64,000 nucleotides of DNA from Bispira polyomma (lineage: Eukaryota). A program made the position numbers and the translations under genes. This document shows, one piece after another, positions 2,329 to 58,220 of the stretch. Every line of letters starts with the position of its first letter. Positions within the stretch are counted from its first letter, which is position 1. The DNA is taken from assembly GCA_965649765.1 (NCBI GenBank), contig OZ287751.1, forward strand, positions 62,496,001 to 62,560,000, read 5' to 3'. A model generated the notes under the pieces. The model did no database searches. It worked only from the letters and a program-made list of their open reading frames with translations, and had not been told where the DNA came from.

Positions 2329-3290
2329 TTATGTAGGAGGATTTAGTAAACTTTGGAAAGTAAGGGGAACAGTGTTACTCTGTGAGGTATGGGTACTAAT
2401 ATAAGACCAGACTGCATCGCGCCTCCAAGTACCATGCATACATATGCTATCCATGTCTACATTGACATCATATGTCAGGGTAGCCGCAGAGCGGTGAAAT
2501 GTATGAAACCCATGCCCTAACAATGGCACCTGCATTACTCTGAGAATTGAGGCTAACCTGCGCCTAAGCATAGACTGTTTCAACAACTCATAGTTATCAG
2601 TAATAAGGAGAGGATCCTGGGGTGAGAACTTGAATTATTCCAGCAGTAACTTAAGGGTCTGCACAGGGCACATAAGATGGTTCTGTATGGAAGGCAATTT
2701 GATGACATGTGGTTGGTTGGGGGCCTGCAAGTTTTTGGCCCATTTCAAGGAGATGTGGGCCCCAGGGTATTCAAATGTGACATCCTGCCTACAAATATTC
2801 CTGGTGGGATCATATTGGGTGCTGGAGGCTGGAGCAATATTCGATATCCTAAGAAAGCCATAAAAGGCAAGTAGGAAGGCAGCATGGTATGTGAATGAAC
2901 ACTACAGAGCTGTGAGATTTCTTTTATTTGGTGAAGTGAGAAAATACCTTTACTCCTTACAGGACGAGGTCCTGTGAGCATGAGGGACTCGAGGAATTTC
3001 TTGACCATAGGTGCCACAAACACCATGTATGGAAGAGAATACTTTATAAAATGGAATTTTACTGTTAAAATGTAATTCAAGGCCACCCTATAGGTGACAC
3101 TTTGGGATGCCAGAAACTCGAGAAACATGAGAATTGTTGCTTCTGAAGACCAATCGTTAATTCGATGGGCCACCTTAAATGCTACAAACAACCTGAACTG
3201 ACTCTTATACTGCCTTTGTGTATTAAGACCCACAGCATGCTGAGATATCTGCATTGCTGCATCCAACATGGGTAGCAGATGAGGTGACAC
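2329..3290 (-). pseudogene. Tyrosine recombinase of Ngaro element (frameshifted)
   Basis: N-terminal T..QY..QFRLF SAM-like region; catalytic-end motifs FHTFHRSAAT and HGTWRRDAVWSY. Confidence 0.85.
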
Positions 3291-3298
3291 ACCTACAA

Positions 3299-5343
3299 TT
3301 AAAAATCAAACAAGAACATCATGTCCCTGTGTACACAATCTATAACACTTTGACTGAAATCCCTTTTGACTTGCATTTGGCTACAACGAGACAACTTGTC
3401 TGCCACTTGATTCAATTTACCTGGTATATGGGACACTCTCAACTTAATATTGTATTTTGCTACTATAAGCCAAATATTTCTAAGGACTAATGCCAGAAAG
3501 GCATCCTTAGTTTTGCCAGTAGTGACTACACTGACTGCACTTTCATTATCACAATGAATATGGATGGCCGAATTTTCCCACTGTGTGCCCCACAAACGCA
3601 GGGCCACCAAAACATTGTCAATTTCATAATGGGTAATGGACAAAATATTCAAAATTGGAGGGGAATGGGGACAGTATACACATGCTCATTCCATACACCA
3701 CCTAGCCTTGACAATGTAGCGTCTACAAAGACCTCATCAGAACGAGATTCACGCTGGTAAAACACTTTACCATTAAAATTCTGTAAGAAAACTATAAACC
3801 ATAGAATGTCTCCTCTGTATGCTTCGTCAGCAGTGAAAATTTTCTTATCCTTATTTGCCCTAAGTAAGGCCAGTAACCTATTTACAAAATCTTGTGATCC
3901 AGGAACACATCTAGATATGTATAACAATTTGCCCAACAGTTATTGAAGTGACACCTTAGTTGCTTGGTGGGCTATGATACTACTCTTACAAATGGTCATA
4001 ATGTCTTCATTTTTTTCAGGGGAAATACTAAACTCACGTTTGACTACGTCAACTTGTATGCCCATGATGGTAATACACTTAGTGGGGGAAACAATTTTCT
4101 TTGGGTTTAGAGGAAAACCTAGTGATTTAATGACTGAAAGTAGAGTTTCAAAAGCAGTTTCTGAGTGATCCTTATGGCAAACTGCATAAATATCATCGAT
4201 ATAATTATAGACTGTGTATCCATGTAAGCTCATGATGTACCTTATAAAATCCGAACAACGCTGAAAGATAGAAGTGCCATGGACGGCCCCAAAGGGCAAA
4301 TTTCAATCCAGATAGTACTTCCCATCCCATGAGAGGCCCAGATGTAAGGCATCAGCAGGGTCCATTCTGATGTTACGAAATGCTCTAGAAATATCTGCCT
4401 TATATAATCTAGCTTGATCCCCTAGGTGAACAAGCTGTGGGACAAGATCATTGATATGGGGGAGAACTAAGGTGAAATCAACGCCGTCATATTTGTCCTT
4501 ACACGTGGCTTTATTGACTGAGGTGTCCCCATAAGAAAGGTCTAAAATTACCCTTTTTGCAGAGCCCCTGTCTTTATCCCTGGTCATTAAAGGGGCCCAA
4601 GTGAACTTCTCGTGGGGAGTTTCACCAAAAGGACCTAAGAAAGCTCCCTCTTGCAATTCAGTAGAAATATACTTCTCTATGGCTGTGGGTTCACACTTAG
4701 CAGAATGGTGGTTTTCCAGTGCAGTACTGGTGATTTGATTACCTGTGGCTAAACCCAAGGGAAACCCATATTTGATGTAACCAAAAAGCCTCTGGTCATG
4801 ATAACCCGTTCTATATTTACACCACTCCTGCCACTGCAGGCCTGAGGGGAGGGGGAATCTGCAACCTTTATAGTTGGGGACACCTGAGGTTCTGATTTGC
4901 TCAGCCACATATGTGTAATGTTCTAATTTATCTATGTCCATTTGTGGCCCTTCGGGGGCATATACTGCAGAAGTATCACCTGCTACAAAGCCAAGCTTTC
5001 TATTAAATGAAACTTTATTCTTGAATATAACATTCTTGTCTGAGCCCCAGTGTACGGGAGACCTGCTCTGCCGACGTGTGCTCTGGGGTGTATGGCCTAA
5101 AAGACCATTTGCTAAAAGACCATTTGCTACGGGCTGTGAGCTCGTGACATTACAATTACACAAGTTAAATTTGACACATTCGGGGGTACAAAGTCTAAAG
5201 AGGGGAGTCCCCACAAATGCACTCACTTTTACATCTTTAACGTTATTATATGGTCCGTACTTATGAATACTAGAAATAAGGTTATATGATTCATTAACTG
5301 ATAGTCTCATGCCTGTACTAATACGAATACGAGATGAGGCCAT
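3299..5343 (-). pseudogene. Reverse transcriptase/RNase H of Ngaro element
   Basis: RT motifs KADISRAFR, LPFG, NYIDD; RNase H motifs FVDAT, HYE, HCDN, HIPGKLNQVADKLSR. In-frame stops at 4303-4305 and 3940-3942 and a frameshift near 3650. Confidence 0.9.
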
Positions 5344-5464
5344 TGTACAAGTAGAACACCCGCCACCACTAAGCTTAACTAAATTAGAGTCTCGTTGTGA
5401 TAAATCAATGCAGCCATGCTGTCCCTATTCTGTGTCAAACTTCTTCTTGTTCTGGCATTCTGGT

Positions 5465-6205
5465 TCAGTGTGGTTGTGCCCCACGTTTCAGCACTTTGAA
5501 GCAATAATAACAAACGTGTTTAAACAACGTTTGGTCTGAGCTGTCGTGATGATCACTAGAATGAGAGCATGAGCCCTCATTCCACCATTTACATGCTACC
5601 TTCTTACTGGTGGATGACGTGGAAGAAGTGGTTGCAGGGGTGGGTTTCGACAGCGTGACCGACCCACTAAAAACGGCAGACTGGGAATAGGTAAGTCTAT
5701 TGTCCCCCAGGATGCGCGTATCAGTCCAGTTGACAGAGCCATCCTCAATCTGGTGCATGCTTACAGCAAAAGCCCCTCTGCCAATATACCATGACAGATT
5801 CTCCCCAAGTTTGATTGTTTCCCTCATTTCAATTAACATAGCCCTGCTAATGGTGGGATCGGGTGTGTCCAAAATGTTCTTTACCTGGCCTATTACAAAG
5901 TTACCCATGGATAAATCGTCAAAAGTTTGGCGTTTCCCATTCGGGCCTGTTAGGCAGGCTTCATTTGGCCATCTCATATGGGCAGAGACATGAGAGGTTT
6001 CAGTGATGTTATACCCACCAGTCTTACGACGACACCCACCTTGTCCAATTTCTAGCTTGACTCGCGCTTCCAAGGCAGCTATGCGCTCATCAACCAGCAT
6101 CTGGACCACTTCCAGGGCACGTTTCCTCTGGTCACCTACTGGCGTGTGCGTGGTAGTACAGGTCGGGTACTGTGATTGTACCTGGACAGGTCGTCCAAAC
6201 TGATC
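5465..6205 (-). pseudogene. Gag-like ORF of Ngaro element (N-terminus missing)
   Basis: C-terminal Cys/His finger CKWWNEGSC...HVCYYC...H; lies immediately upstream of the RT. Confidence 0.7.
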
Positions 6206-7288
6206 TCTGTGTGTAATACAGTAGAAGACACGTTTATACTGCAATTAAAATATTTGCAGTCCTTTGTAAACAATGATAAAGATGTTTAACTGTCTGCAAA
6301 TATAAATATGCAAAAATGTAAAAGGGAAAAAAACATTTGCAGCATATCGATGTTTAAATAATGAAAATCTCACTTTATTTGGATGTTAATTTCATCATTG
6401 TCTGCTGGTTTGTTTGTTTGTTTGTCACCAGGTTTACACACAGACTACTTAACCAGTTACATGACTTTTTAAAAAACGTTTTGGCACTTCAGGGGAGGTA
6501 TGCACTCTACTGGGTGTTCTTCTACTTTCAATAATATTATTATTATTACATTTATGCATGCAGTCCTGTGTCTGACTAATGCAGTTATCACTAACCAACA
6601 CCCCCCCCCCTCTCCCCTCCACATAACCCCCCCCCCCCCCCCCCCCCTCACAAACACACACACTCACACAATGCTAATTCCACAAACACCTTTGCAGAGA
6701 CAGATAAATGGGGTTTATTCTTTCAGTAAGCTGACCCTTCCTGGTCACTGAATAATTCACAGCTCCCAGTCAGAACTTCCCCATTTACACTAGCTCATCA
6801 AAAAAAGAGGACTAGGGCTTAATCCAATATCCGCTCCAGACACAGAGCAAAATTCTAGGTTTTCACAAGAGAAACATCCACCATAATTTTGTCACAATAC
6901 AGAACCAAAATCCAATCACCTGAAACCCCATGCCCTCTAAAATCTATGGCTTAGCCTTTCTTATGCCCGTGTTTGTACAGATGTATGGCGGTGCTTTATT
7001 TTATTTGGGGTACTGACTGAAGTGGTAATGTATCCATAATTATTTGTATTACACTGGCGTCTAATTTTATAAAATAAACATAAAGAACAATATGTGGATG
7101 CAAATATTACAAAATTAATTAAAATGGGTTTGACAATTGGCACCAACACATATTTAACTAATGAAAACAATAGTGAATTGTCAAATCCTGCCAGATATTT
7201 TAAAGATGTATACTATAGCTTGTATAACACTTGGCAAGATATGCTGTTTATGACAGTTATGACAAGTAAGTTTTTCTATATTTCATTT

Positions 7289-9637: not shown

Positions 9638-10431
9638 AGAGTATACAGTCATGAAATAGTTGCTATGTATGTTGTTTCCTACTACTAGGAAATGCAGCTT
9701 GAAGGAAGAAAAATCATTAATGGGCTCGCCGCTTGTGACTGGCTTTCTGTTGTTTTTAAATGTACCAGTCCTATTGCTAATAACGAGAGCATTGATTTTT
9801 AACTCAAGATAGCCATTATATAACGGTGTGTGTAAACCTATAGTGGTGGGAAAGGGAGAAGGAGTCAGCTGTGAGCAAAAAGATGTGTGGCATTGCACAC
9901 AACAAAAGAACAATATATAGAGAAAAACAGGAACCAATATATAGGCTTCTTAAATTACACATCTTCTGTGAGTATTATAACTGATGGCTGTATGGATATA
10001 TACAAATATGGCAATACTAACATTTTATAAAATGACATAATCATAATTGTGGAAATACAATGAAACAGAAAATGGGAATTGCAAACTGAAATAGAAAAAC
10101 TGGCAAGGTTGTGTAAGAACTGTACATATATGTATATATATATATATAATACATGTACATATATATGTGCCAAAAGGACACAACAAGGATAGAAAAAACA
10201 ACCCCCGAGTCATCTGGCTGGCCAGAGTGCAATCAATGCAGTTTTACAAGGTTACAGTTTGGTAATGGTTTGACGGTGCCATGATTGAGCGACACATCTA
10301 TCACCCCTATTTCTCTGACTACAGTATGGCTACAAGCATCGACAACCAGCCTAATGTTATTAAGAACTGTCCCATGGACATCATTAGCACTGGCAGAGAC
10401 TAGGGCAGTCGGTAGGTAGAGTGCCAATACT

Positions 10432-10660
10432 ATGTCCTCGGGGAATCATTGCCAGGGGATTGGGACGGAGGAAACTCTGGTCCATGATCAGGATACACCA
10501 TTGATGTCAGGTGACAAGACTCCGGCCAGCCAGAGCTGTGTCCAGATGGAGTTTCCAGAGAGTGAGGGATCGAATATTAAAGTGGATATTCCGGATAAGC
10601 CGGAGAGCGATGGATCTTCATCAACTCAGAGTACAGAGGAGGAAGAAAGTGGAGAAGAAG
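10432..10660 (+). CDS. Cav3: Predicted coding exon 1 of T-type Ca2+ channel (acidic N-terminus)
   Basis: ATG at 10432 opens MSSGNH...STEEEESGEE. Donor AAG|GTGAGG at 10660/10661 is phase 1 (229 nt), matching the phase-1 acceptor at 12693 and giving ...EEEESGEEG-HSDLPYPGY, the acidic stretch expected before the LPYP motif of Cav3. Confidence 0.75.
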
Positions 10661-10680
10661 GTGAGGAAGAATTTGTGGTT

Positions 10681-11469
10681 AGAACCTCAGTTATCTGAAC
10701 TATGTTGACTAAACAGTTTATATACAGTAGAACCTCGGTTATCTCAAATATGTTGACTGAACAGTTTATATTCAGTAGAACCTCGGTTATCTCAAATATG
10801 TTGACTGAACAGTTTATATTCAGTAGAACCTCGGTTATCTCAAATATGTTGACTGAACAGTTTATATTCAGTAGAACCTCGGTTATCTCAAATATGTTGA
10901 CTGAACAGTTTATATTCAGTAGAACCTTGGTTATCTCAAATATGTTGACTGAACAGTTTATATACAGTAGAACCTCGGTTATCTCAAATATGTTGACTGA
11001 ACAGTTTATATACAGTAGAACCTCGGTTATCTGAACTCCATTGACTGAACAGTTTATATACAGTAGAACCTCAGTTATGTGAACTACATTGACTGAACAG
11101 TTTATATACAGTAGAGCCTCAGTTATCTGAACTCCATTGACTGAACAGTTTATATACAGTAGAACCTCAGTTATCTGAACTCCATTGACTGAACAGTTTA
11201 TATACAGTAGAGCCTCAGTTATCTGGACTATGTTGACTGGACAGTTTATATACAGTAGGACCTCAGTTATCTGAACTACATTGACTGAACAGTTTATATA
11301 CAGTAGAACCTCAGTTATCTGGACTATGTTGACTGGACAGTTTATATACAGTACAACCTCAGTTATCTGGACTATGTTGACTGGACAGTTTATATACAGT
11401 ACAACCTCGGTTATCTGAACTTTGTTGACTAGACAGTTTATATACAGAAGAACCTCAGTTATCTGAACT
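10681..11469 (+). repeat. 48-bp minisatellite, about 16 copies, in the Cav3 intron
   Basis: Unit agaacctc(g/a)gttatct(caaatatg/gaactcca)ttgactgaacagtttatat(a/t)cagt; appears as a 16-aa periodicity in ORF 10702-11034. Confidence 0.97.
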
Positions 11470-12693
11470 TGTCCTGTTTCCTGAACTGTCTATATAATGA
11501 ACAAAATACCAGTCTCTTTCATAATCATATCTTTTACCTAGTGTTGGCAGGCCAATGTCTGTGTACCAATAAACGCCCACCCTGATTAGAAAAAGTGGAT
11601 ATCTTTTTTTAGGAATATCTATTTCAAACATACTTTTGGTAATGCAAATATAATAATGTTATAACTGTTTATAAACTAATTTAGTTGTTAAAGTTCTATT
11701 TGCTTTTCTGTTTTATTGACTTTGTTTTATCAGAACAAAAAATTAGTGTGTGGATACAATGAGGTTCTGTGACGGAATTAAAATCCCTTAATTGTAATAA
11801 ACTAATGTTTCTAAAGTTGTCTCTATTTTCAAAAAATATAATTAATTTTTCCATCTTTTATTGATCAAACTGACAACTATGTTTTACAATATCATACAGT
11901 AAATAAATGGGTTACAATTAAGAATAGAGCTAAATCTTTTGTGGTAACACATAGAGTAAAAATAATGTACAACCCAGTACTGAATCACACCTGTTAAAGT
12001 AGAAATCTCTTTAGTCAATTTCCATTTTATGTGGAGAAATACAAGTATTTTCACAATGGCCATTACCATTAAAATCTACAATGTTTATTGGAAATCCTGC
12101 TTAAGTAGAGATTTCTCCTGCTAGACTCCTGGTCTCTTGAGATGTGACTTCTAGGGCTTCAACTGTGTGATATTTCTTTTTGTTATGTGCACAGGCTTGT
12201 TGAGCAGATTAATAGATAGTATAGCTGTATCACACCTTTTGTCCCTACTGTCTTTTAGCTTTTCAACATAGAAAGAGGTGGCAATAAAATGACTCTACAT
12301 TCATAAAAGGGGAGATTGTTTTACCCCTTACTTGGGTTTTAAACTGTGATTTTAAAGTTCGCTGTACAGTCCACAATATCTAGAAAGCAGTGGTTATCTC
12401 AACCACTTTGAGTAGAACCTCCAAGAAACATGAAATGGAAATTGACAGAATAGAGTTCTACTTATAGGGGTAGAATAAAAAACTTAAAAGTATGTTTGCC
12501 TATAGATAAACTTTTGTTATAACTTCAGGGAATAATTTTCTTGTATTTTTTTTTGTATTTTTGAGTTTCTTTTTCTTTTTCTTTTAGTAACAAGAAAGCT
12601 TACAGGTAAAACGTCATACTGGTTGTTGAATATGGCATGTATTTCATGTGTTAGATTTCACGTTTTTACTACACCATCCCTTTTTACTTCCAG

Positions 12694-15600
12694 GACATTC
12701 TGACCTGCCGTACCCAGGTTACGTTGCTGTGGCTTTCCGTTTCTTCAAGCAGGACTCGCGACCTCGCTGTTGGTGTCTGAAGATTATCTCGTGTCCCTGG
12801 TTTGAGCGTGTCAGCATGAGCGTGATCTTACTGAACTGTGTTACCTTGGGCATGTATCAGCCTTGTGAGGATGAAGTCTGCGAAACCACCAGGTGCAAAG
12901 TCCTCGAAGGATTCGATCACTTCATCTTCACCTTCTTTGCACTCGAAATGATTATAAAGGTGCTCGCCATGGGACTCTATGGAAAGTATGCCTACTTAGC
13001 AGAAACCTGGAATAGATTAGACATGTTTATTGTGTTAGCTGGTGCATTTGAATACATGTTAAATACTGACAACCTCCGGCTGTCTGCAATTCGAACGATC
13101 CGCGTGCTGCGCCCACTACGGGCAATCAACCGGATCCCCAGCATGAGGATTCTGGTGATGTTATTGCTGGATACTCTACCTATGCTCGGCAATGTCTTGC
13201 TTCTGTGTTTCTTTGTGTTCTTTGTCTTTGGAATAATTGGTGTACAACTCTGGGCGGGGTTGCTGCGACAACGCTGTTTCTTCAATCTGCCAGAGAATGT
13301 TACTATTCCTCCAGAAGCCAATATTACAGATTACTATTTCACCGACAGAGATAAGGATTACATCTGTACTACACCTGGCGATGGAGGTATGTCGTTTTGT
13401 CATTCTGAGGCACACCCACTCCCCCACTACAAGTACCGAGATCTGGATATGGGGCGATGCAATGAATCAGCTCAGCCGTTTTCTAGTAATTTAGCTACAA
13501 ATTCATCCTGCGTCAATTGGAATCAGTACTACACAGATTGCAGGGCAAAAGCACCAAATCCATTCCAAGGGGCCATTTCATTTGATAACATTGGTTTGGC
13601 ATGGGTGGCTATATTCCAGGTAATTAGTTTAGCAGGGTGGGTAAATATAATGTATCACATACAAGATGCCCACTCCTTTTGGGATTTTCTTTACTTTGTG
13701 AGTCTTATTGTGATCGGTGCATTCTTCATGATTAACCTATGCCTGGTTGTCATAGCAACACAGTTTTCAGAAACAAAGAAACGAGAGACAGAAAGAATGG
13801 TTCAAGAGAGGAAGCGGTTCTATTCCAGTAGTACCCTTGCCAGTGTATCTGAACCCGGTGGCTGTTACGATGAGATTGTAAAGTATATATCCCACCTATG
13901 CAGGCGCTTCAAGCGTAAGTTTAATCGCCACTTTAGAAATGCTCAAGGCCGACGACAACAAAAAGTGACTCCGGAAAAGGGGATATCATTGAGTCGAAAG
14001 AAGAGGAAAAAACTTCAGACTGTACATTTGCATCATCACCATCACTTTCATCATCACCATTATCACATTAGTAACAGTGTCAACACTGATGCAGTCAAAC
14101 TGCAGGCACCCAGAGCCAGTCCAGATCCCTCAGATATCGATCCCATGCCGTCACCTCTCAGACCAAGTGTTCTCATTATTCCACACTCAGAGATTCAGTA
14201 TGACCTCTCACGAGACTCCTTACAACATGCAAACCAGAACCAAACTCTTCAGCCGATAAATTCTGTGATAGCAAACACCCGGCACTGTGCTCACTGTGAC
14301 ACACACACTGAGCCCAATTCTCAAGTCAGCAAGCATCCGGCTTCATGTAAATGTCCCAGAGAAGCCTTTAGTGAGAACTACATCTGTTCTACGAATCGTC
14401 TGACTAGGGCATCATCCTTAAATCATAGGCGCAGTTCGGATAGCTACCGTCGACGGAGGAAGATGAGCGAGGGACATGTTCATTGTCACGAGGAGAGAGA
14501 GCAAACCAATTATGTAATGCTAGAACTATTAAAATGTCAGAACAGGAAACCAATGGTCCTTACAACACAGGTACCGCAAATACAAGAAGCTTCCGTGATT
14601 AATGAACAAATCAATTTGTTATCATCTGTGGACAGTAATAAGATCCATGAAAAGCCCAAACCTCCCAACTCTTCTAGTAAGCAAAACAGCATTATGTGTG
14701 CAGTACATAATTTAGAATTACACAATTGCAATGACCAACCACCCCATGAAAATAATAACCAGGTGAATGGAGATGAATTATACTCTCATTCCAATTGTGC
14801 ATTGCATGATGTTGAAGCTCGTGCACACCATCATTGCGTAAGCAAGTGTCACTCACACTGTTCTGAATATGAATATTCAGCTTCTGACGATAATTCCGAC
14901 GATTCGACTGATTACGAGACTGTAAAGCAAAAGCAGAAGCCGAATTGCTGGAATAAATTTCAACACGGTTTGAAGAGACTGGTAGATAGTAACTACTTCA
15001 CTAGAGGCATTCTAGGAGCAATCGTCATTAATACTTTAAGTATGGGAATTGAACACCACAATCAACCTGATAAACTGACATTGGTGCTGGAATATAGTAA
15101 TCTGTTTTTTAGTCTCCTCTTTGCCTTAGAGATGTTGCTCAAGTTGGTAAGTGAGGGAATTTTGGGATATATTAAAAATGGATTCAATGTGTTAGATGGG
15201 GTCATTGTAATATTGGGTGTTGTTGAGTTGTTCCAAGGAGGCACAAGTGGCTTAAGTGTACTGAGGACATTCCGTTTGCTAAGAATTCTGAAACTTGTGA
15301 GGTTCTTACCCGCCTTACGGTATCAACTGGTTATCATGCTTAGAACAATGGACAATGTAGCAACCTTTTTTGCACTTTTAGTGCTCTTCATCTTTATATT
15401 CAGTGTTTTGGGAATGCATTTATTTGGTGGTAAGTTTACCACTCATCCGGTCACAGGAAATAGGTGTACATGCCAAGAAATTAAGAACGAAACCATCGCT
15501 TGCAAAACAGAGCGTAAAAACTTTGACAGTTTACTTTGGTCTCTAGTTACAGTGTTCCAAATCCTGACACAAGAAGATTGGAATGAAGTCTTGTATAACG

Positions 15601-18587
15601 GAATGGCTAAAACCTCAGCCTGGGCCGCACTCTATTTCATTGCACTAATGACCTTTGGAAATTATGTGCTTTTCAACTTACTAGTTGCTATTCTAGTGGA
15701 AGGGTTTTCAACTGAAGGAGATGAAAAAAAATCAAAAGATGGTGACGCCAGTGGTAAAGATAATAAATCAAGGAAAGCTTTAAAAGGGAGTACAAGAAAG
15801 ACACCAAAGAACAAGAATATAAACAAACTAGCTGAAGAAAGAGACTGTTTAATTAAAAAATGCAACTGTCATTTGAAATATCATCCCAAAGAACCATATC
15901 TGTGCTCAGTTAATAGTGTTAATGATGTTAAGAATAACAAGGAGAAAGAGAGAAAGCTATTGGGCATTGTCACTACCCCACCACCACCTTGTCATGAAAG
16001 GGAGGTAATGAGTGCAACCTGCAGTCTAGAACCTTTAAATCCTCCATTAATAACGCATACAGCAGCAACCCCTATGCCAACACCACAGGGCTCGTCCAGT
16101 GAGATCTATGGTACTCCATATCAGGATCCACAGAACTTTTTGACTGTAGAATTCCCATATGAAAGAGATGTGTTGTCTGTAGAAAGGCCAAGAGGGTCAC
16201 GAAACAATCTGTTGTCTCCTCACTTCAGCTTTAAAGACAGTAGAAGTTCATGGTTTGGTCAGACCTTACCTAACACTGACGATCACTTGCCAAATGGAGA
16301 CAGCGAGTTTGGTACGAGTTTGAAAGTAGAAACCAGCTTCCAACAAGGCACACCATTAAATAACCAGCGAGTAATACGCCAGCAGTCATTTGGTAGGTCT
16401 GACCAGAGTCTGCATCCTAATTCATACAGCTGTAGCTCCTCTAAATCTAATATCAATCTTAGCAGAGCTTGCAGTCAGTCCAGGTCCATCACCCTGAGTC
16501 GTGAAAATAGTTTGAAATCTGAGCGGAGTACCCTGAGCCCTCAGAACTCTTTTGGCTCTACACCCCATGAGGAATACAAACAGAACAACCTGGCTGAACC
16601 TCCAGAGTCAAACGGCGATGAAAATACAGAATCCGAGGATGATATTCAGTGCAGATATACATGGTGTCCAGAACCAGTAGGTTGCTGTTTGAATCGAATA
16701 GACTACGCACTCTTTGCACTGTCTCCGGAAAATAGGATCCGTAAACTCTGCCAGAATCTTATTCGTAAGAAGAGTTTTGATTACACAGTGTTATTATTTA
16801 TCGCACTCAACTGTATAACCCTAGCCATGGAAAGACCTGACATACCGGATTACAGCACAGAGAGGAAGTTCCTTTCTATATCCAATTACATCTTCACCAC
16901 AGCATTTACCTTGGAAATGACTGTAAAGGTGATAGCCCAAGGCTTTGTCGTAGGTAAAGGTACATACCTTAGGAGTGGATGGAACGTTATGGACGGTTTT
17001 CTCGTGTTTATTTCTCTACTTGATTTGACCATCTCCTTGACTGCCTCAACCAGTCCCAGAATCTTTGGCATCCTGCGTGTGTTCAGACTTCTAAGAACTC
17101 TAAAGCCGTTGAGGGTAATAAGCAGAGCACCAGGTTTGAAGCTAGTGGTCCAAACACTTTTGTCATCTTTGAGACCTATTGGAAACATAGTTCTCATCTG
17201 TTGTACATTCTTTATTATATTTGGTATTTTGGGAGTGCAGTTATTCAAAGGGAAGTTCTACTATTGCGATGGCACAAACATAGTGGGAGTACTTAACAAA
17301 ACAGACTGCTTAAACAAAGGGCCCCCTTACAGGTGGGTTAACCGGAAGTACAACTTTGACGACCTTGGCCAGGCGCTCATGTCCCTGTTTGTGCTGGCCT
17401 CAAAAGATGGTTGGGTGAGCATTATGTATACAGGACTGGATGCAGTTGACGTGGATATGCAACCACAGGTGAACTACAGCGAATGGCGACTTCTCTATTT
17501 CATATCATTCTTGCTCTTAGTTGGATTTTTTGTGCTCAATATGTTCGTGGGTGTGGTGGTGGAAAACTTCCATAAATGTCGTGAAAGTCAGGAAAAAGAA
17601 GAACGAGCCAGACGAGCAGCCAAGCGGGCTAAGAAGATGGAGCGGAAAAGGAGACATAAAGGCCAGCCTCCTTACTGGGCTGAATACAGCTGGATCCGTA
17701 AATTTATCCACACCGTCACAAGTAGCAAGTACTTTGATCTCGCTATAGCAGGGGTTATAGGGCTGAACGTGATCACAATGGCTCTGGAGTACTACATGAT
17801 GCCCAAGGAGTTGATGTTTGCCCTGAAGATCTTTAACTATTTCTTCACATCCGTTTTCATTCTGGAGGCGGCAGTGAAGATGATAGCCCTGGGGTTTGTC
17901 CGGTATATGAAAGACAGGTGGAATCAGCTGGACGTGATCATCGCCATTCTGTCCATTGTGGGCATCGTCCTGGAGGAGATGAAATCCGGAGTCATTCCTA
18001 TCAATCCCACTATCATTAGAGTGATGAGGGTGTTAAGGATAGCCAGGGTATTGAAACTCTTGAAAATGGCAAAAGGGATACGAGCATTGTTGGACACGGT
18101 CATCCAAGCGTTACCTCAGGTGGGTAACCTGGGTCTGTTGTTTTTCCTGTTGTTTTTTATTTTTGCCGCTCTCGGTGTGGAACTCTTCGGTCGCTTAGAA
18201 TGCTCCGACTTACACCCGTGTGAGGGCCTCAGTAAACATGCTCACTTCAGAAACTTTGGCATTGCTTTCTTGACGCTCTTCCGCGTAGCTACGGGTGATA
18301 ACTGGAATGGGATCATGAAGGACACTTTGCGGGAGGACTGTGATAACGACGTGAACTGTATCCAGAATTGCTGCGTTAGCCCCATCATTTCTCCCATGTT
18401 CTTTGTGGTATTTGTACTGATGGCCCAGTTTGTACTGGTCAATGTGGTAGTGGCGGTATTAATGAAGCACCTAGAGGACTCACACAAGCAGATTCACGAT
18501 GACGCTGATTTAGAAATCGAATTGCAAAACGACTCGGACGAAAGCAATAACTGTGAAGAGGAGCAGAATACACCGAGGGGGGATTAA
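12694..18587 (+). CDS. Cav3: Voltage-gated T-type calcium channel alpha-1 subunit (Cav3, CACNA1G/H/I family); single 5.9 kb exon encoding domains I-IV
   Basis: Uninterrupted ORF with four S4 sensors (IRTIRVLRPLRAINR, LRTFRLLRILKLVR, LRVFRLLRTLKPLRVISR, IRVMRVLRIARVLKLLK) and four pore loops (SLAGW, TQEDW, SKDGW, TGDNW). Cav3-specific gating brake PGGCYDEIVKYISHL, poly-His, APRASP and TAATPMPTP motifs are present. Acceptor tttttacttccag| ends at 12693. Confidence 0.97.
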
Positions 18588-21929: not shown

Positions 21930-22095
21930 NNNNNNNNNNNNNNNNNNNNNNNNNNNNNNNNNNNNNNNNNNNNNNNNNNNNNNNNNNNNNNNNNNNNNNN
22001 NNNNNNNNNNNNNNNNNNNNNNNNNNNNNNNNNNNNNNNNNNNNNNNNNNNNNNNNNNNNNNNNNNNNNNNNNNNNNNNNNNNNNNNNNNNNNNN
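21930..22095. other. Assembly gap
   Basis: Run of 166 N. Confidence 1.
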
Positions 22096-25866: not shown

Positions 25867-26508
25867 TATATATTATATGATGACCCTTTTAAGTTCTGGA
25901 ATAGATTCCCTATGCGTTTATACTGTGCAGTTTGTGTGGTGGATATAATGATGGATATTGTGAACTTGTGAGATATGTAATTATTTATAGATATGCGTGA
26001 TCACTTAGTACTTCAATCAACAATTATACCAAGCTTTTTGAAAAACTTTACCAATGCACTACTTGTATCAGTATTTTTGTTGCTTATAGGAAAATTTAAA
26101 GTCTTATTCTGTAAAAGAATATTGGTTTTATGTTATTAGATTTATTTATATCAATTTATTGTTATATTTGTATAAATATAAATGTACAGAAATAATACAT
26201 GGAACTGACACATATATTAACTGTGTTTTTGTTTATTTTAAAAAGGTTGAAAATCAGATTAAATATGCATGTTATTATTGTCTATATTTAGAGGTGTAAC
26301 TGTCTAGTGAAGTAGTTTGTCCTATAACCAGTTAATGGTGACCTTGACTTTTAAATAACTTGTGTAGATTAAAAATCAGGAACCAGATATTGGGCATATT
26401 TTATACTAGATATTCAATATAATTGTCTAACCTGGGTTTTAACCTTAAAATTTTGACCTTTACTTTAAAACTCCTGTATGTACTTATATGTCATATTAAA
26501 CTGTTAAT

Positions 26509-26700
26509 GGGGCCGCGGTGGCCTAGTGGTTAGCAAGTATTGCGCTTCACAATCACTGGTCTCTCACCTCTGGGTGGCGTGAGTTCAAATCCCGGCGATG
26601 CCTATGTGGGAAAGGTGGTAGTTCCTTACTGTGGGCCACTGGTCTCAGTGCAGAACCTTGATCAACTGTATGCAGTGTTTCCTCCAGCATTTCCAACTAC
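26509..26700 (+). mobile_element. tRNA-derived SINE, family A, 3'-truncated
   Basis: ggggccgcggtggcctagtggttagc (A box) ... gagttcaaatccc (B box); highly similar to 52820-53076. Confidence 0.85.
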
Positions 26701-27669
26701 ACACAAGAATCTTTAAGCCTGTTGTCAAAGTTTGCATATTATAACTTCTGCTATAAGGCACAATAACTATGATGAAACTTGAACAATTGTAAAACAGCTT
26801 ATAAGATTAGTTTGGCTTTAATACGTTGATTTTCTGTAACAGTTTGATGTTGGAGGAAATCAGAGCAGGGTAGTTGGTCAATATTGATGTTTTGCAAACC
26901 ATAGCCATCAGCATGTCTACTACCATCTTTTTCACTTACACAACCAGTGCCCTAATTCAAACCCCAATTGCAAAGTTGTGAGTTGTGTGATCATCTTACT
27001 ACATTACCATCAAGGCCTCCAACAACTTTTAGGTAGTAGTAATTTGTGTATAGTGAACAGACAATATCCAACAGACACAAAAATACAGCAAAATCCTCAG
27101 TTATCTAAACTTCTATTCTCTGAAAAGATGGCTGCTGTAGCCACCAACGTAAAAACGGTTTCCGTTAATTTAAAGAAAAACTATTGCAGGTATCTTCAAA
27201 AAATTTATTACATGGGGTATAGTTTCCTTGGGATTGATTTTGAGCCTCAACCCTAAAACAAGATGGCTGCCATAGGTGCCGGTGTCAAAACAGTTTCTGC
27301 AGAAAAAGGCTTCAATATATCTTAACATTTACTACATAGGTTCAGCTCGGGTTTAGGGTTGTTTAGGATTGATTTTGTTGCTGCCATTGTCTGAAAAGGG
27401 AAAGGGTGACCATTGACAAATGTTAATGTGTACCATTTTTACCCCAAAAACAAGTCCCAATGCTAAGAGCTTGTGCGGTATTATGTCCAATTTTTGATGG
27501 CCTGCGTCGAGTTGGCACCATTTCTAGTTTAACAATACAGCTGCCAAAGCCATAGTACAGGTTTGTGTGACGCAGAAAAATACAGACATATGAAGTTTGC
27601 AATTAGACATCACATGACAAGATAAATAGCTGTATGATTCATAGCTTGTTTTATCTTTGATATATATAA

Positions 27670-28569
27670 TTGTATCCACCGATGCGGTGGATACTTTGGT
27701 TCAGCGTTCGCTGCGCCGCATCTGCAGCCACAGATTTATCTTTTTCTACTGGCTGGTTTTCATAACTAGAAGGTTGAATCTCTTCATAGGTGATATGTAT
27801 AACATATATATATATGTCCTCTGCAAGCTTGCAGACATTTGACCTTGAAGCTCTTCATTTAAGGTCATCCACGAAGTGCCAAAATACCCCAAGAAGCAGA
27901 CTTTAAAAGTGCCTATATCTCCCTTATTATTGGTCCTAGGGGTTTGGTATGTATAGCCCACCTATAGGAAATCATAGGCTGGGAATCTTCTGATGTGGTC
28001 AGGTTTGACCCTGAGCCCCTCATTCAAGGTCAAACTAGGATAGCCAAACTTAAAAGTGTGTTAACTCACTTATTATCGGTCCTAGAGGTTTGCAATGTGA
28101 AACCAACTTATAGGTAACCATGGGCTGGGAATCTTCTGATGTGGTCAGATTTGACATTGGACCCCCATCAAGGTTAGACGAGGGTAGCTAAAATAAAAAG
28201 TGCTTATAACTTGCATATTATCGGTCCTAGAGGTTTGCAATGTGAAACCAACTTATAGGTAACCATGGGCTGGAAATCTTCTGATGTGGTCAAATTTGTC
28301 TTTGGACCCCTCCATCAAGGTCAGATGAGGGTAGCTAAACTTAAAAGTGCTTATAACTCTCTTATTATTGGTCCTACAGTTTTGAGATGTGAAACCAACC
28401 TATAGGAAATCATGGGCTGGGAGTCTTCTGGTGTGGTCAGATTTGGCCTTGGGCCCCTCCTACAAGGTCAGACGAGGGTAGCCATAGCTCGGGTGCTTCC
28501 TAGCTAGGGTGCTTTGTCTTTCTGGTAGATACAAATATGCATCGGTTTTCCAATGCGCCAGGTCTAATT
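27670..28569 (+). mobile_element. Non-autonomous Helentron-like element (HINE/DINE-1 type) with internal ~146-bp tandem array
   Basis: 5' subTIR ttgtatccacc with adjacent inverted copy ggtggatac; 3' subTIR ggtagatacaa (28524-28534); 3' hairpin gcatcgg..ccaatgc; TT at both ends; repeat anchors at 27932, 28078, 28223 and 28370. Confidence 0.75.
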
Positions 28570-34500: not shown

Positions 34501-36975
34501 TGATTATGGACAGAACAGTAAATAAAGGCTAAATTGATAGTGCAGGTGAACCAGTTGGTAGTTATATGTGGCAAACTAATTGTAAAACAATCTTTACACA
34601 TTTAGCAATCTTATTTACTTAAGCTAACATCTCATTGTTGGTTTTACTGCCAAAACCCAGCAAATGAGATTAGTATCAGATCCTAACCAGTTGTACAGTC
34701 GCGATTTATCTATTGCAAAACTAGAAAGTGAATGTTGGTTTTACACATCACTTTCAACATCTTTGGTCATTGGTGTGGCGGTCAGATTTGTTGGTCTAGA
34801 AAAAGAGTACTGGAAATCACCAACCTGCAAACAAGTACCTGGCCATCTTTCCCACAAGAAAGAAGCTTTGTGATTCCACCCTACTGTCTTGAGAGGATGG
34901 TGACATTAAATCATCAGATGCTTATAACTACTAGGCCACTGCAACACCATACAAAACTGGAATGTAGACATGTAGACTAGACAGTTACATTCTTCTTTCC
35001 ATTAATGCGAAACATGTGTTTTTTTCAATTATTGGTATCACACTCTTAGTATGTATACTTGGACATTTATTGTTGATTCCTCACAAACAGGCAATTTAAA
35101 CCCTAATAATTACTTTTTAATATACAGCTATTTGACAAAGATTGGTATTGCAGCCTATGTAAGACATTCAGAGATTGCACATGGCACACCCTCAGTTGTA
35201 TGATCAAGATCCAATGTTTTTTTTTCTTCTCCATTTATCATGTTAGGAAAAAAACACCTGTTTAAACCTAGGCAATAATGAGCCTTTTAAAATAAATGGG
35301 TATGACCTTTTTTTATAAACATGTTAGCTTCTTCGTAAATGGTGGGGAAACTAATTTTTATTGCTTTCCCCTAAAAAAAGAAAATAACAAAATGCAGATT
35401 TGTTTCTGTGTCTGTGTGTGATTAAATTAGTTATATAATCGCAGAGACATGTTCAATAGACTTGTCTCAGATCTCAAGGGAATTCTCTGATCCATTCACA
35501 TTTTGCAGACGGAATCATGCCATAGACTCCTATCTGTTTAAGTCCAGACACCGGCCTTGTTTTTATCCAGAACACAGATCAGAGATGACCTGACCATAAC
35601 TTCCAACACGGACCATTCAATCCATCCCCAAAATAGTTCTGTTACTTGCATTCATTCGTAAGTCTACATAAAGTCTTTACTCAAAACAGATATATATATA
35701 TTACTATTACAATACACATATATAGTTTGTTTTAAATATGTATTTTATATATATTATATCGTGTAATCATTTCTACATAAATGACTCTTTAGTAGTGTAT
35801 GTCTGTGCATACAGCATAACCTGAGATGCCAAAAAGGTTGGTTTTGCTGCTATATTAAAGGTTTATGTCACTTAAGCTGAATATCTCGTGACAAACTCTA
35901 CCATTATGCTGAGCTTTTTTCTGCCATTGACGTAATCTGGGTTTCTGGGGCCTATTTGATACATGGGAAGTAGTAAGGTCTTATAATATTGCTTACAGTA
36001 GGTTTTGTCTCAATACACTTTGCTGTTTTATTTCATTACTGATTTCTTAGATGACTGCATCCTCCTTTACACCTGAACTCAGAAATTAGTTGTTGCAATT
36101 ATTTTACTTCAGACATAGACAACTAGCAACATGTTTTGTGAAAAGCTCATTTCAAAGTGCTAATCACATAATAAGCAAAAAAAAGTTTGGTTATTTTTAT
36201 TTACCTAATGATATTTTTGAGCTGAAATAGACTCTACATAGATCCTAATCAGAATGAGAGGTTGCCAACAGTTACAGTCGTTGAACAAAGCCCTAAAACA
36301 CTGACTTGTTCAGTTTTTTGCTATTGCTTTTCTCTCCCCTACGGAAGGTTCCTATCAAAGCTTTCCTTTATATACTGAAAAGGCTGCAAACTTCAGTATC
36401 AATTATTTTATAATGGGATCATACAAAATATATCATTTATTTTGTTCCTACATTCTAGAATATAGGAACTTTAGAATAATATCAAAAATACAAATTATGA
36501 TTTTTTCTTCGTCTATTATTTTATAAGAGATTATGCAGTTTACAGATTAAATTAATTACACTCTGTGTTAACCATGCAAATTAGTTAAACTCAAAGGTTT
36601 GGTATTTTCAGTAAACTATCACAATTCACATTAACTATCATTTATTATATTAAATACAAGTATGATTAATAAAAGGGTTTTAGGAATCTTGGCCATGGCA
36701 TATATGTGGGAGAGTGGGCAGTAGACTAACTGAAAACCGGTGGTTTGTAAAGCAAGAAAATCCCAGACAAACTACCTTGCTCTGATCTCATCCACCAGTG
36801 AAACTGTTCATAGTGATAAGACACAAGACATGTTGAAAGCAACGTTTAACCCAAAATACATAGATATAAGGGGTGCCAGGATCATAGTCCGGCAACGGTA
36901 TCTTGCAATGGTTTGTTTTCTATTTGTTAGACAAGGTACCAGTCTATTAAAATTGGCGATATTCTATCTCACTTA

Positions 36976-37960
36976 GAAATGCTTAAATTTGGTGTGCTGC
37001 AAGGGACTGTGCTTGGACCACTCCTATTTTCATTATACACTACACCCCTTAGCCAAATTATTTCCTCCTATTCTTCTCTGAAGTATCACTTCTATGCCTA
37101 TGATACACAGATCTACGCGCACCTTACTCCAAGCACATCAATCGGTGCCCTGGAAGTCCTTCAGAAATGTTTAGCAGGTGTTCAAAATTGTATGGCGCTT
37201 AATAAGCTCAAACTGAATCCGGATAAAACCAAATTCAAATTTTTTGGCTTGCGCACTCAACATGCTGAACTGTCAAATTATTTTCCAGTAAACATTCTGA
37301 AGACACTGTTATCCCCAACTGGTAAAGCGAGGAGCTTGGGAGTTTTGTTTGATATTGATCTTTTCCTTTTCCAGTCATATCTAATCAGTGTGTAAGTCAT
37401 GCTTCATGGGTCTTAGAGACTTTAGGAGAATCAGGAGGTACTTTCTAAAAGCGGTTGAAATAACTGCAGCAATGGTAGGCAGCAAACTGGATTAGTGCAA
37501 TTCATTATTTTGCAGTTTGACTAAAAAGGATCTAAACAAATTACAATGCATCCAGATCCAGAATTCATCGGCACATCTGGTCAGTTGTTCTGCTCAGCTT
37601 TCACATGCCTTATCGATTCTAAAGTCACTCCACTGGTTCGTAGTAGGTATTGGTGTGCTTTTAAAACTGCCACAATAGTATATTGTGTCAATCAAGTTTC
37701 TTGATTCGGGTTTGTCTAAATACTTAAAACCACACTTGTGTTACTATATAAATACCAGGCGAGCTGCTCCCAAAAATAGATTACTTCTTGTTCCACAATA
37801 TAAGTCCAAAGTACACAGGTCAAAGGTTCACTTTGATAAAAGTTTTGCAAATTGAATAGTTATTGAATGGTTTACCTCAACACATTAGGATAGTTCCGTC
37901 CCTGTATTTCTTCCGGTGCAGTTTAAAGACCTATCTGTTCAATGATGCATTCCGAATATA
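36976..37960 (+). mobile_element. L2/CR1-clade LINE, 5'-truncated RT pseudogene
   Basis: [27 protein letters not shown] (decayed YADD), [15 protein letters not shown]; frameshifted continuation ending in LKTYLF. Confidence 0.88.
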
Positions 37961-55530: not shown

Positions 55531-56170
55531 GGTAAATGATTACTATGTTTTTTTGGGGTGCACTCAACCATTGCTAGAATTTGAGTGCGATTTCCTAATT
55601 AGTTTCTTGTTGGAAATGTAAATGTTCAAGGGATGTCAGGTTTCTTGGATATCCACAAATACTTCACAACAGTTACTGGCCAAGGACATTCAGTCCAGAA
55701 AAACCCAACAAACAGAATTTTTAATAGTAGGTTATAAGATATTATTATACATAAGATTGTTACATATCCTTCTGTTTTATTAGTTTCCTCATTTGTATGA
55801 CATTTTCAATGCTGCCCACTAACCCCAATTAGTTACCATTGGACATTACCTTCTGGTCAGTATTGGCAGAACATTTTACATTTTAGTATTCACCTTTTTT
55901 GGCATCACACAAGGTTAAACGAATGAACATCTTCAATTTAGCAGTTTTAAATAAATTAACGCCTATTTTAGCGGTAAGTGGCAACTACATATATGGTTGA
56001 ATTATATCTTTTCATTTGTAACTTCATTTTATGATGTTTGCACAAATTTTCGGGGGTGCCGACAGTGTCATTTGTTTACTTTGTACAAAAGTTAGCGATA
56101 ATCGCATACAGTTGTTTAATATATTTGTTATAAGCAATGACTATTTACCGTTCTCGTGAAAACATTCATA

Positions 56171-58220
56171 TTGATATTAAAGGCATAACAATAGGAAACC
56201 AAACAATTAAACTTACACAATTTGCAGATGACACCACCTTAATACTAGATGGTAGTAGACGTTCTTTGCAGGCAGCTTTGAATACAATAGAGATATTTGG
56301 AAATTTATCTGGGCTAAGAATGAATAAAGAAAAGACAAAAGTTATTTGGATTGGCAGTAAAAAGCTTTCCAAATATAAGTTAAATGTTTCATTAGAACTA
56401 CACTGGGGAGATCATGATTTTTCACTTCTGGGATTAGAACTTTCAACCAATTTAAATAATATCCCATCTATAAATTATGATAAGGTGTTTGAAAAAGTAA
56501 AAAATATTCTCAAGTCGTGGAAGTACAGGATACTAACCCCCATTGGAAAAATAACTGTGATCAAAACACTGATCCTATCAAAATTTAATCATCTCTTTTT
56601 AACAATCCCTGTACCTAAAAGTACCCTTGAAGACTTAAATAAGCTTTTATACCACTATTTATGGGATGGAAAACCAGATAAAATTAATAGGAAGACCATA
56701 TGTAAAAGTTACTCAGAAGGAGGGTTAAAAATGATTGATGTCTTCCAATTTGAAAAATCACTAAAAGTTAGCTGGCTGAGAAACATTATCTCTGAGAAGC
56801 CAAAATTATGGTATACACTTCTTCATGACACTATTGGAGAATTTAAAAACCTATGTATTCTAGGGGGTGAATGGTGCTTCACTTTTTTACACAAATTAAA
56901 CCCATTTTGGAAAGCGGTATTTACACACTGGATAGAAACATGTAGAGTAAAAAAAATCCACTCAAATAATGACATCATGCATAGTTGTATCTGGTTTAAC
57001 AAGAACATCTCCAGCAACAAACTTTATTTTTCAAACTGGTCTAAAAGAGGCATTAACACAATTGGGGATCTTTTAGATTCAAATGGTCAAATGATAAGTC
57101 TAGAAGATCTAAAACTTAGGTATAAGTTAAACATTAACTTTCAAAATTACCTTACAGTGAAGCAACTCATTAGTCTATATATAAATAGTAACAAAAAAGG
57201 GGATAACTGGAAAATGGTACGACCATATATTCCTTTCCACATATCATTATTAATCAGCTGTACAAAAGGTAACAAAGATGTATATGATGTATTGTATCAT
57301 TCTGAAACGTACAATAGAAAGAACCAGTTAAAATGGAATCAAGAACTTAACATTAGAAGTGAAAAAGAGATGTGGAAATCAATATATAATGCGTGCTTCT
57401 ATTCAATATTAGATAATTCATATATATGGACTCAATTTAAAATTATACACAGAATAATTGGCACTAAAGAATATATGCACAAATTAAAAATATCAAATTC
57501 AGATTTGTGTAGAATTTGTGGAGAAAACAGTGAAAGTATTTTACATATTTTTTCAGAGTGTTCTGTTGTTAAAGAATTGTGGAATAATGTCAAATCTTGA
57601 ATTGAATTGAAAATAGATGTGAATCTAGAACTGAATCAGGCCACTCTTATATTGAGATACTGGTACCGAGATAAAATATAATGGCCTTTAAATTTTGTTT
57701 TAATAATAACTAGGCAATACATATTTACATGTGCCAAAAATAACCACAATTTAAATATATATTGATTACAAAAGATAATAAAGGATAAGTATCTAGAACA
57801 AGAATATGTATCTATAACAAACCACTCATTTGATTTTTTCAAAAAGAAATGGTCAATTTGGAAAAATATAGTTTTAGATATCTAAATCATAACAAACACA
57901 ATCCAAGATTTAACAATTAACAAATAACCTATTAAAATCTACAATAATGTATTTTGTAAAGTCAAAGTAATTAACCCATTTTTTTAGACAATATAAGAGA
58001 GGTTTATGTTATCCTTATTTGGATTTATGTAACTCATGAGCAGCTAATTATTGGTTCTTTTTTTAAAAATGTTCAGAAGAAACGTCTTATAAATGTAACA
58101 ATGCATGTCATATTTACAGTAACCGTAGCAACATTATTATTTATAGCACATTATTGTACTGCACTGCATCTGTACTGTAATATATTAAAGGAACTAAATG
58201 TTTTTTGGGGGAAAAAAACA
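56171..58220 (+). mobile_element. L1/Tx1-clade LINE, 5'-truncated, with 12-bp TSD
   Basis: QFADDTT RT motif, GKITVIKTLILSK, GGLKMID, zinc knuckle CRIC...HIFSEC; A-rich tail; TSD aaaacattcata at 56159-56170 and 58221-58232; premature stops from 57598. Confidence 0.93.

Follow-up and report, generated by a model that had tools for sequence, protein, structure and literature searches.

The window analysed here, a stretch of 64,000 nucleotides from the fan worm Bispira polyomma, carries a Cav3 channel gene whose coding sequence is broken by a single intron, which raises the questions of whether such a locus is real, whether the fan worm has another Cav3, and whether the introns were removed where the gene stood or the gene was copied from a spliced mRNA. 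The first question can be answered plainly: a Cav3 gene nearly devoid of introns does exist, and it is both old and conserved.

The long exon (Table 1) encodes the four Cav3 domains, all in one piece, together with the stop codon. It belongs to a stop-free + strand frame of 1,985 codons (12630-18584), closed by a TAA ending at 18587, in which Pfam recognizes four Ion_trans domains (E 2.9e-238); its conceptual translation has four six-transmembrane domains with S4 sensors; the S4 segments number four, as do the pore loops. Joining the GT at 10661 to the pyrimidine-rich AG at 12693 keeps the frame in phase 1 and gives a predicted protein of 2,040 amino acids. Both the uninterrupted exon and the phase 1 coding intron had been proposed in the first-pass annotation, and both have held up, the former in the open frame, the Pfam domains and the DNA unitigs, the latter in that the join works and a second species has the acceptor at the same codon. 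The long exon served as the query in database searches, the joined translation being used only for local alignments, the tree and the locus comparison. Predicted exon 1 is single-copy in the genome and resembles other Cav3 N-termini in composition; in 10310-10431, a short upstream ORF and a run of pyrimidines that closes with CAG at about 10324 suggest that a non-coding exon may precede it. The unit of the 48-bp array at the start of the intron resembles, as we take it, the end of a pogo/Tigger-type transposon, and the raised read depth there points to related repeats at other sites in the genome.

Table 1. Features of the Cav3 locus and of the alternative pore exons of its relatives (window coordinates unless another locus is named)
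Feature	Position	Strand	Remarks
Predicted exon 1	10432..10660	+	76 codons, Ser/acidic N-terminus; best upstream ATG-to-GT phase 1 candidate
Only coding intron	10661..12693	+	GT-AG, phase 1, non-ancestral position; acceptor common to the second species
48-bp tandem array, 16.5 copies	10680..11469	+	Start of the intron
Long exon	12694..18587	+	5,894 nt; frame, translation, Pfam
Ancestral U12 AT-AC intron site, precisely removed	12795..12797	+	Pro codon; junction 12796/12797
Domain I pore segment	13620..13712	+	Corresponds to the 93-nt Capitella 'A' exon (SLAGWVN); Ala codon GCA 13632-13634
APRASPD motif, optional exon 8b included	14106..14126	+	Alignment; PMC3376122
Domain II turret, 53 aa, exon-12b type	15402..15560	+	HPVTG common to Capitella 12b; PMC7382465, PMC9694082
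Domain II filter Glu and the next, 'beacon' Asp	15573..15578	+	Both intact
Domain III filter Asp	17406..17408	+	
III-IV linker, short, 56 aa, without exon 25c	17562..17729	+	Alignment
Domain IV filter Asp	18297..18299	+	
Acidic C-terminal tail, ca. 36 aa	18477..18587	+	Relatives 429-790 aa; stop aligned in the second species
Single-copy non-coding element	25966..26204	+	74% identical to a stretch downstream of the second-species orthologue
Capitella domain I pore exon pair, filter E/A	26501-26593 and 26667-26759 (Capitella locus)		
Tubulanus domain I pore exon pair, filter G/E	48181-48273 and 48339-48431 (Tubulanus locus)		

Short-read DNA unitigs from three runs of two samples cover 12083 to at least 16106 without a break and with zero letter differences from the assembly, and in two of the three runs they reach 16250, the limit of the stretch tested. 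They cross the border between the intron and the long exon without mismatch and extend at least 3.4 kb into the exon, which makes the locus genomic DNA and not a cDNA contaminant. Elsewhere in the window, three open frames of 186, 373 and 259 codons on the minus strand (2748-6244) have no Pfam match and are possibly, by our assumption, a decayed DIRS-like element; partial LINE reverse transcriptase frames lie at 36931-37392 and 56134-57597, and an N gap occupies 21930-22095.

The closest protein, P0001, comes from the second species (92% identity in domain I, 89% overall) and is likewise encoded by one open frame. All top homologues are Cav3 proteins, and a Cav3-only FastTree tree places the pair beside Capitella Cav3 (support 0.994), with no long branch. 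Measured against this equally intronless orthologue, dN/dS is 0.04 overall (membrane domains 0.01-0.04, long linkers 0.04-0.07) at a dS of ca. 1.5, so that the gene is under strong purifying selection, as had been expected from the sequence. The linkers, initially described as divergent, are so only in comparison with other phyla, being 82% identical between the two species. The non-coding element downstream of the gene has its counterpart at a similar distance, 7-9 kb downstream in both species; it appears to mark an orthologous site, possibly as the end of the 3' UTR, and since both species have it, the two Cav3 genes probably occupy the same genomic site. No exon 1 was found within 9.8 kb of the second-species gene. 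A 147-bp tandem array of 4 copies is situated at 27903-28482 in the window, and a related repeat near the second-species orthologue.

The Cav3 genes of relatives span 34-190 kb and comprise at least 28 exons in Capitella and at least 33 in the nemertean Tubulanus. None of the 21 intron positions common to these two is occupied in the fan worm; 17 of them align without gaps, and the remaining 4 fall in variable loops. Altogether roughly 30 introns would have been lost, a U12 intron among them. In the same genome Nav1, Nav2, Cav1 and Cav2 are still multi-exon genes over 45-75 kb; judged from these comparisons, the intron loss is wholesale, precise and specific to this gene. The first coding intron of Capitella Cav3 is the U12 AT-AC intron in D1S1, which is described as present across nearly all Cav and Nav genes by conservation (PMC6259924). 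Loss of the minor spliceosome from the genome was considered as a reason for its absence and ruled out by two U12 snRNA genes and by the fan-worm Cav2, which keeps a U12-type acceptor at the D1S1 site. The surviving intron lies ca. 33 codons upstream of the U12 site, where the Capitella frame is uninterrupted; having no Capitella counterpart, it is a lineage-specific gain under any model. The suggestion of the first-pass annotation that 3'-biased loss had spared the first intron thus finds no support, the ancestral D1S1 intron being gone and the surviving one non-ancestral. The public Capitella Cav3 model reads through the U12 donor (Capitella locus coordinates 10186-10194), and several mollusc, nemertean and Owenia models begin after the U12 intron, so that their N-termini are probably mis-annotated.

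The selectivity filter reads A-E-D-D and not EEDD; reviews describe the Cav3 filter as 'always EEDD' (PMC10120453) or 'universally EEDD' (PMC6259924). Domain I has SLAGW in the fan worm, in the second species and in an Owenia model, and E in the 217 other proteins retrieved. The gene is thus a Cav3 by descent and, as read from its filter residues, not a canonical EEDD calcium channel. Sequencing error and a novelty of the retrocopy were both rejected as sources of the alanine, the same codon being present in the second species, the Owenia model and a Capitella exon. In Capitella Cav3 the domain I pore segment is encoded by two tandem 93-nt exons with AG/GT ends, 73 nt apart, one with E and one with A (SLAGWVN), and a comparable pair in Tubulanus, in the order G, E, is separated by 65 nt; only one exon is present in Lymnaea and in a rotifer. 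By this comparison the A residue is that of an ancient alternative exon. Both exons together would duplicate the pore helix, so their use in Capitella and Tubulanus is presumably mutually exclusive, as the genomic structure indicates. In the literature searched, of which coverage was incomplete, neither an AEDD Cav3 nor a domain I filter exon pair was found described.

Other splice choices are frozen as well. The 53-aa turret was considered as a product of exon 12a and assigned to 12b by its length, its GGK start and the HPVTG that it has in common with Capitella 12b; Tubulanus Cav3 holds both 12a and 12b, and the fan worm only the 12b type. Cysteines 1 and 5 of the turret are replaced by Thr, a joint loss specific to this lineage, and a Lys is encoded at 15516-15518. 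A III-IV linker without 25c is the embryonic-type form in Lymnaea (PMC3376122). The tail of ca. 36 aa is another lineage-specific change; a hidden downstream exon restoring a long tail was rejected, as the stops of the two species align and no remnant was seen in 21 kb downstream here or in 10 kb in the second species. Retention of one exon from each tandem pair is the mark of an mRNA template and, together with the precise absence of at least 21 shared introns, bears out the mRNA origin proposed from the sequence alone. As its exon structure would have it, the gene is frozen on one isoform, with exon switching in pore and turret impossible.

The fan-worm Cav3 lies on C4, at 62.5 Mb. Nine single-copy marker genes were taken from the human 16p and 17q regions that carry Cav3 genes, a linkage drawn mostly from human gene maps: seven are on C6 (RBBP6, TBL3, TSR3, TSC2, two LUC7 genes and NDUFB10), CBP is on C1, MYCBPAP on C3, and none on C4. 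The neighbour of Cav3 in Tubulanus is, as we take it, RBBP6-like, and that in starfish is SPATA20, presumably also a neighbour of human CACNA1G. SPATA20 and SoxE were not placed in the fan-worm genome, and MGAT3, a multi-copy gene, was discarded as uninformative. KDM5 and PBX served as controls: the former is on C4 like Cav1, the latter on C9 like Cav2, both Cav genes being intron-rich; the other Cav families reportedly occupy paralogons separate from that of Cav1 (PMC3826523). The marker genes suggest that Cav3 is no longer at its ancestral locus and has moved from the C6 linkage group to C4. By our own estimate this shift favours retroposition about four- to five-fold; it is no proof, because two of the nine markers have also moved. 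A search of the literature for Cav3 marker linkage found nothing. In the same genome, the MGAT3-like glycosyltransferase family is expanded on C11, C7, C13 and C1 with several long single-frame copies, the PBX gene (C9:18141729-18145396) has the exon for PBC positions 119-181 twice, 3.5 kb apart, and the mitochondrial genome (C75) is 15,503 bp in size with protein genes on both strands, which is unusual for annelids. Its ND5 shows 58% identity to that of Sabella spallanzanii and 46-48% to those of the other named annelids compared, which very probably makes the animal a sabellid from a genus other than Sabella.

The probable explanation, in our judgement, is an orphan retrogene: a retrocopy reached C4, gained a 5' intron and replaced its parent, which was lost. 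In the common ancestor with the second species, the mRNA of one Cav3 isoform would have been spliced with the 'A' pore exon, 8b and 12b, without 25c and with a short tail, then reverse-transcribed and inserted on the Cav1-bearing C4. The copy would have obtained its promoter and its single N-terminal intron in one of two ways, through an insertion into the N-terminal sequence that had been copied or through being spliced to a new 5' exon. The parent, rich in introns and situated on C6, the ancestral linkage group, would then have disappeared. That the gene moved by retrotransposition, and that the copy is expressed and functional, is what we infer. Of the traits that characterize orphan retrogenes, three are found here: introns precisely absent relative to outgroups, no intron-rich parent in the assembly, and purifying selection. 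Visual inspection of the 1 kb that follows the gene showed no poly(A) remnant or target-site duplication; at a dS of 1.5 none would be expected. The composition of predicted exon 1, being like that of the ancestral N-terminus, also fits a native 5' end and counts against a retrocopy.

That composition is equally one of the points that speak for loss in place, an unlikely course of events in which the native gene acquired an intron within exon 1, was translocated to C4 at the DNA level and lost all its downstream introns through recombination with cDNA that spared the 5'-most one. The surviving intron is indeed the most 5', as 3'-biased loss predicts, the frozen exon choices are predicted here too, a single copy needs no separate gene loss, and two of the nine markers lie off C6. 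This course would, however, require an independent translocation, and 5.9 kb would have had to replace a gene of the size seen in relatives with zero introns left over; the other four-domain channels keep their introns, and Cav1 and Cav2 their linkage partners. Moreover, no ancestral 5' intron is kept, the U12 intron being gone and the one that survives absent from Capitella. The first-pass annotation had held that loss in place would be preferred if this were the only Cav3 and stood at its ancestral locus; the first half of that premise stands as far as the assembly goes; the second, as the marker genes suggest, probably does not.

Retrogene replacement implies that no parent is left, and the earlier suggestion of a functional second paralogue, i.e., of an intron-rich EEDD parent that exists and is missing from the assembly, was found to be very improbable. 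Six queries were used (three parts of the gene, the whole Capitella protein, the Capitella E pore exon and Tubulanus domain IV), and nothing Cav3-like turned up in the assembly beyond the locus at 10432-18587, yet the same searches do pick up small exons of other channels at 35-50% identity. All 37 candidates were scored, the best of the rest showing 23-47% identity and belonging, as far as could be assigned, to other channel families, and the Capitella E pore exon matches this gene only. A dN/dS of 0.04 also fits a sole copy. In favour of a missed parent it may be said that assemblies have gaps, that the search scores the best candidates only, and that the loss of every EEDD isoform is surprising. 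As far as the assembly goes, the fan-worm Cav3 is its only T-type channel gene. Channel matches in long frames elsewhere were examined as a second Cav3 and rejected as single-domain CatSper-like or Kv genes. Two of the CatSper-like genes lie at C2:62072189-62073412 and C2:15119669-15120709, the former, with one 408-codon frame, being perhaps another intronless copy; at a Nav1-like locus (C2:10393068-10395775) the long domain IV/C-terminal exon is present in two tandem copies with frames of 357 and 358 aa, possibly alternative terminal exons. Finally, a processed pseudogene or an assembly artefact, the outcomes against which the first reading had guarded, has next to no probability and is already largely refuted: the C-terminal tail is short, but the frame is open in two species across a dS of ca. 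1.5 with a dN/dS far from 1, and the DNA unitigs join the intron to the exon.

The protein encoded by the fan-worm gene is predicted to be a low-voltage-activated channel, and, as its filter is one carboxylate short, we incline slightly towards expecting it to select Ca2+ less strongly and to pass more Na+ current than EEDD channels do. An Ala-to-Lys swap at one turret position makes Lymnaea 12b sodium-permeant (PMC9694082), and the fan-worm turret has its Lys at that position, as placed by the motif and the numbering in PMC7382465; this argument is weak because the vertebrate and Capitella 12b turrets carry the same Lys. Going by the filter, a conventional T-type calcium channel may be lacking in the fan worm. 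A wider proposal is put forward tentatively, and we are inclined to doubt it more than to accept it: annelids and nemerteans would tune T-type selectivity by exclusive domain I exons (E versus A/G), and the replacement would have fixed the neutral exon and removed EEDD, making the sole low-voltage-activated channel mainly sodium-conducting or non-selective.

If the replacement is true, this is an unusually large orphan retrogene and, within the literature searched, the first case in a four-domain voltage-gated channel, no retrogene of such a channel having been found in that incompletely covered literature. It would mean that neither a deeply conserved minor intron nor any pore and turret splicing is indispensable to a channel gene, and that the rule of an invariable EEDD in Cav3 has natural exceptions. 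Capitella and Tubulanus would possess a further splice switch, located in the filter and apparently not described before; it lends itself to a direct test, since patch clamp can compare the E isoform with the A isoform within one natural channel. What seems to be new is replacement of this kind for a four-domain channel gene of 6 kb, together with the lost minor intron in D1S1, an animal with AEDD only, and the domain I exon pair.

Retrogene replacement is known but uncommon. The fan-worm gene resembles the orphan retrogenes described by Ciomborowska (2013; PMC3548309) and Carelli (2016; PMC4772013) and amphioxus SYCP1 (PMC5803294) in its intron-free coding sequence, the absence of a parent, strong purifying selection, an apparently new location, and an added 5' exon or intron. 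It differs from SYCP1 in the length of the coding sequence (5.9 kb versus ca. 3.2 kb) and in the loss of some 30 introns including a U12 one, and from known orphan retrogenes in being a four-domain voltage-gated channel in which functionally important alternative exons were frozen. With invertebrate Cav3, as represented by Lymnaea LCav3 (PMC3376122, PMC7382465, PMC9694082), it shares the four domains, the pore motifs of domains II-IV, the beacon Asp, the APRASP motif, a turret of 12b length, a short III-IV linker and its status as a single gene; it is set apart by AEDD, the absence of pore and turret splicing, turret cysteines reduced to 3 of 5, the short tail and the absent D1S1 U12 intron. 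The tandem Cav3 exons of Capitella and Tubulanus are like NALCN exons 15a/15b and 31a/31b (PMC4436565) in swapping one filter residue, although the channel and the domain are different, the change is from an acidic to a small neutral residue and not from Glu to Lys, and for Cav3 we infer exclusivity from genomic structure.
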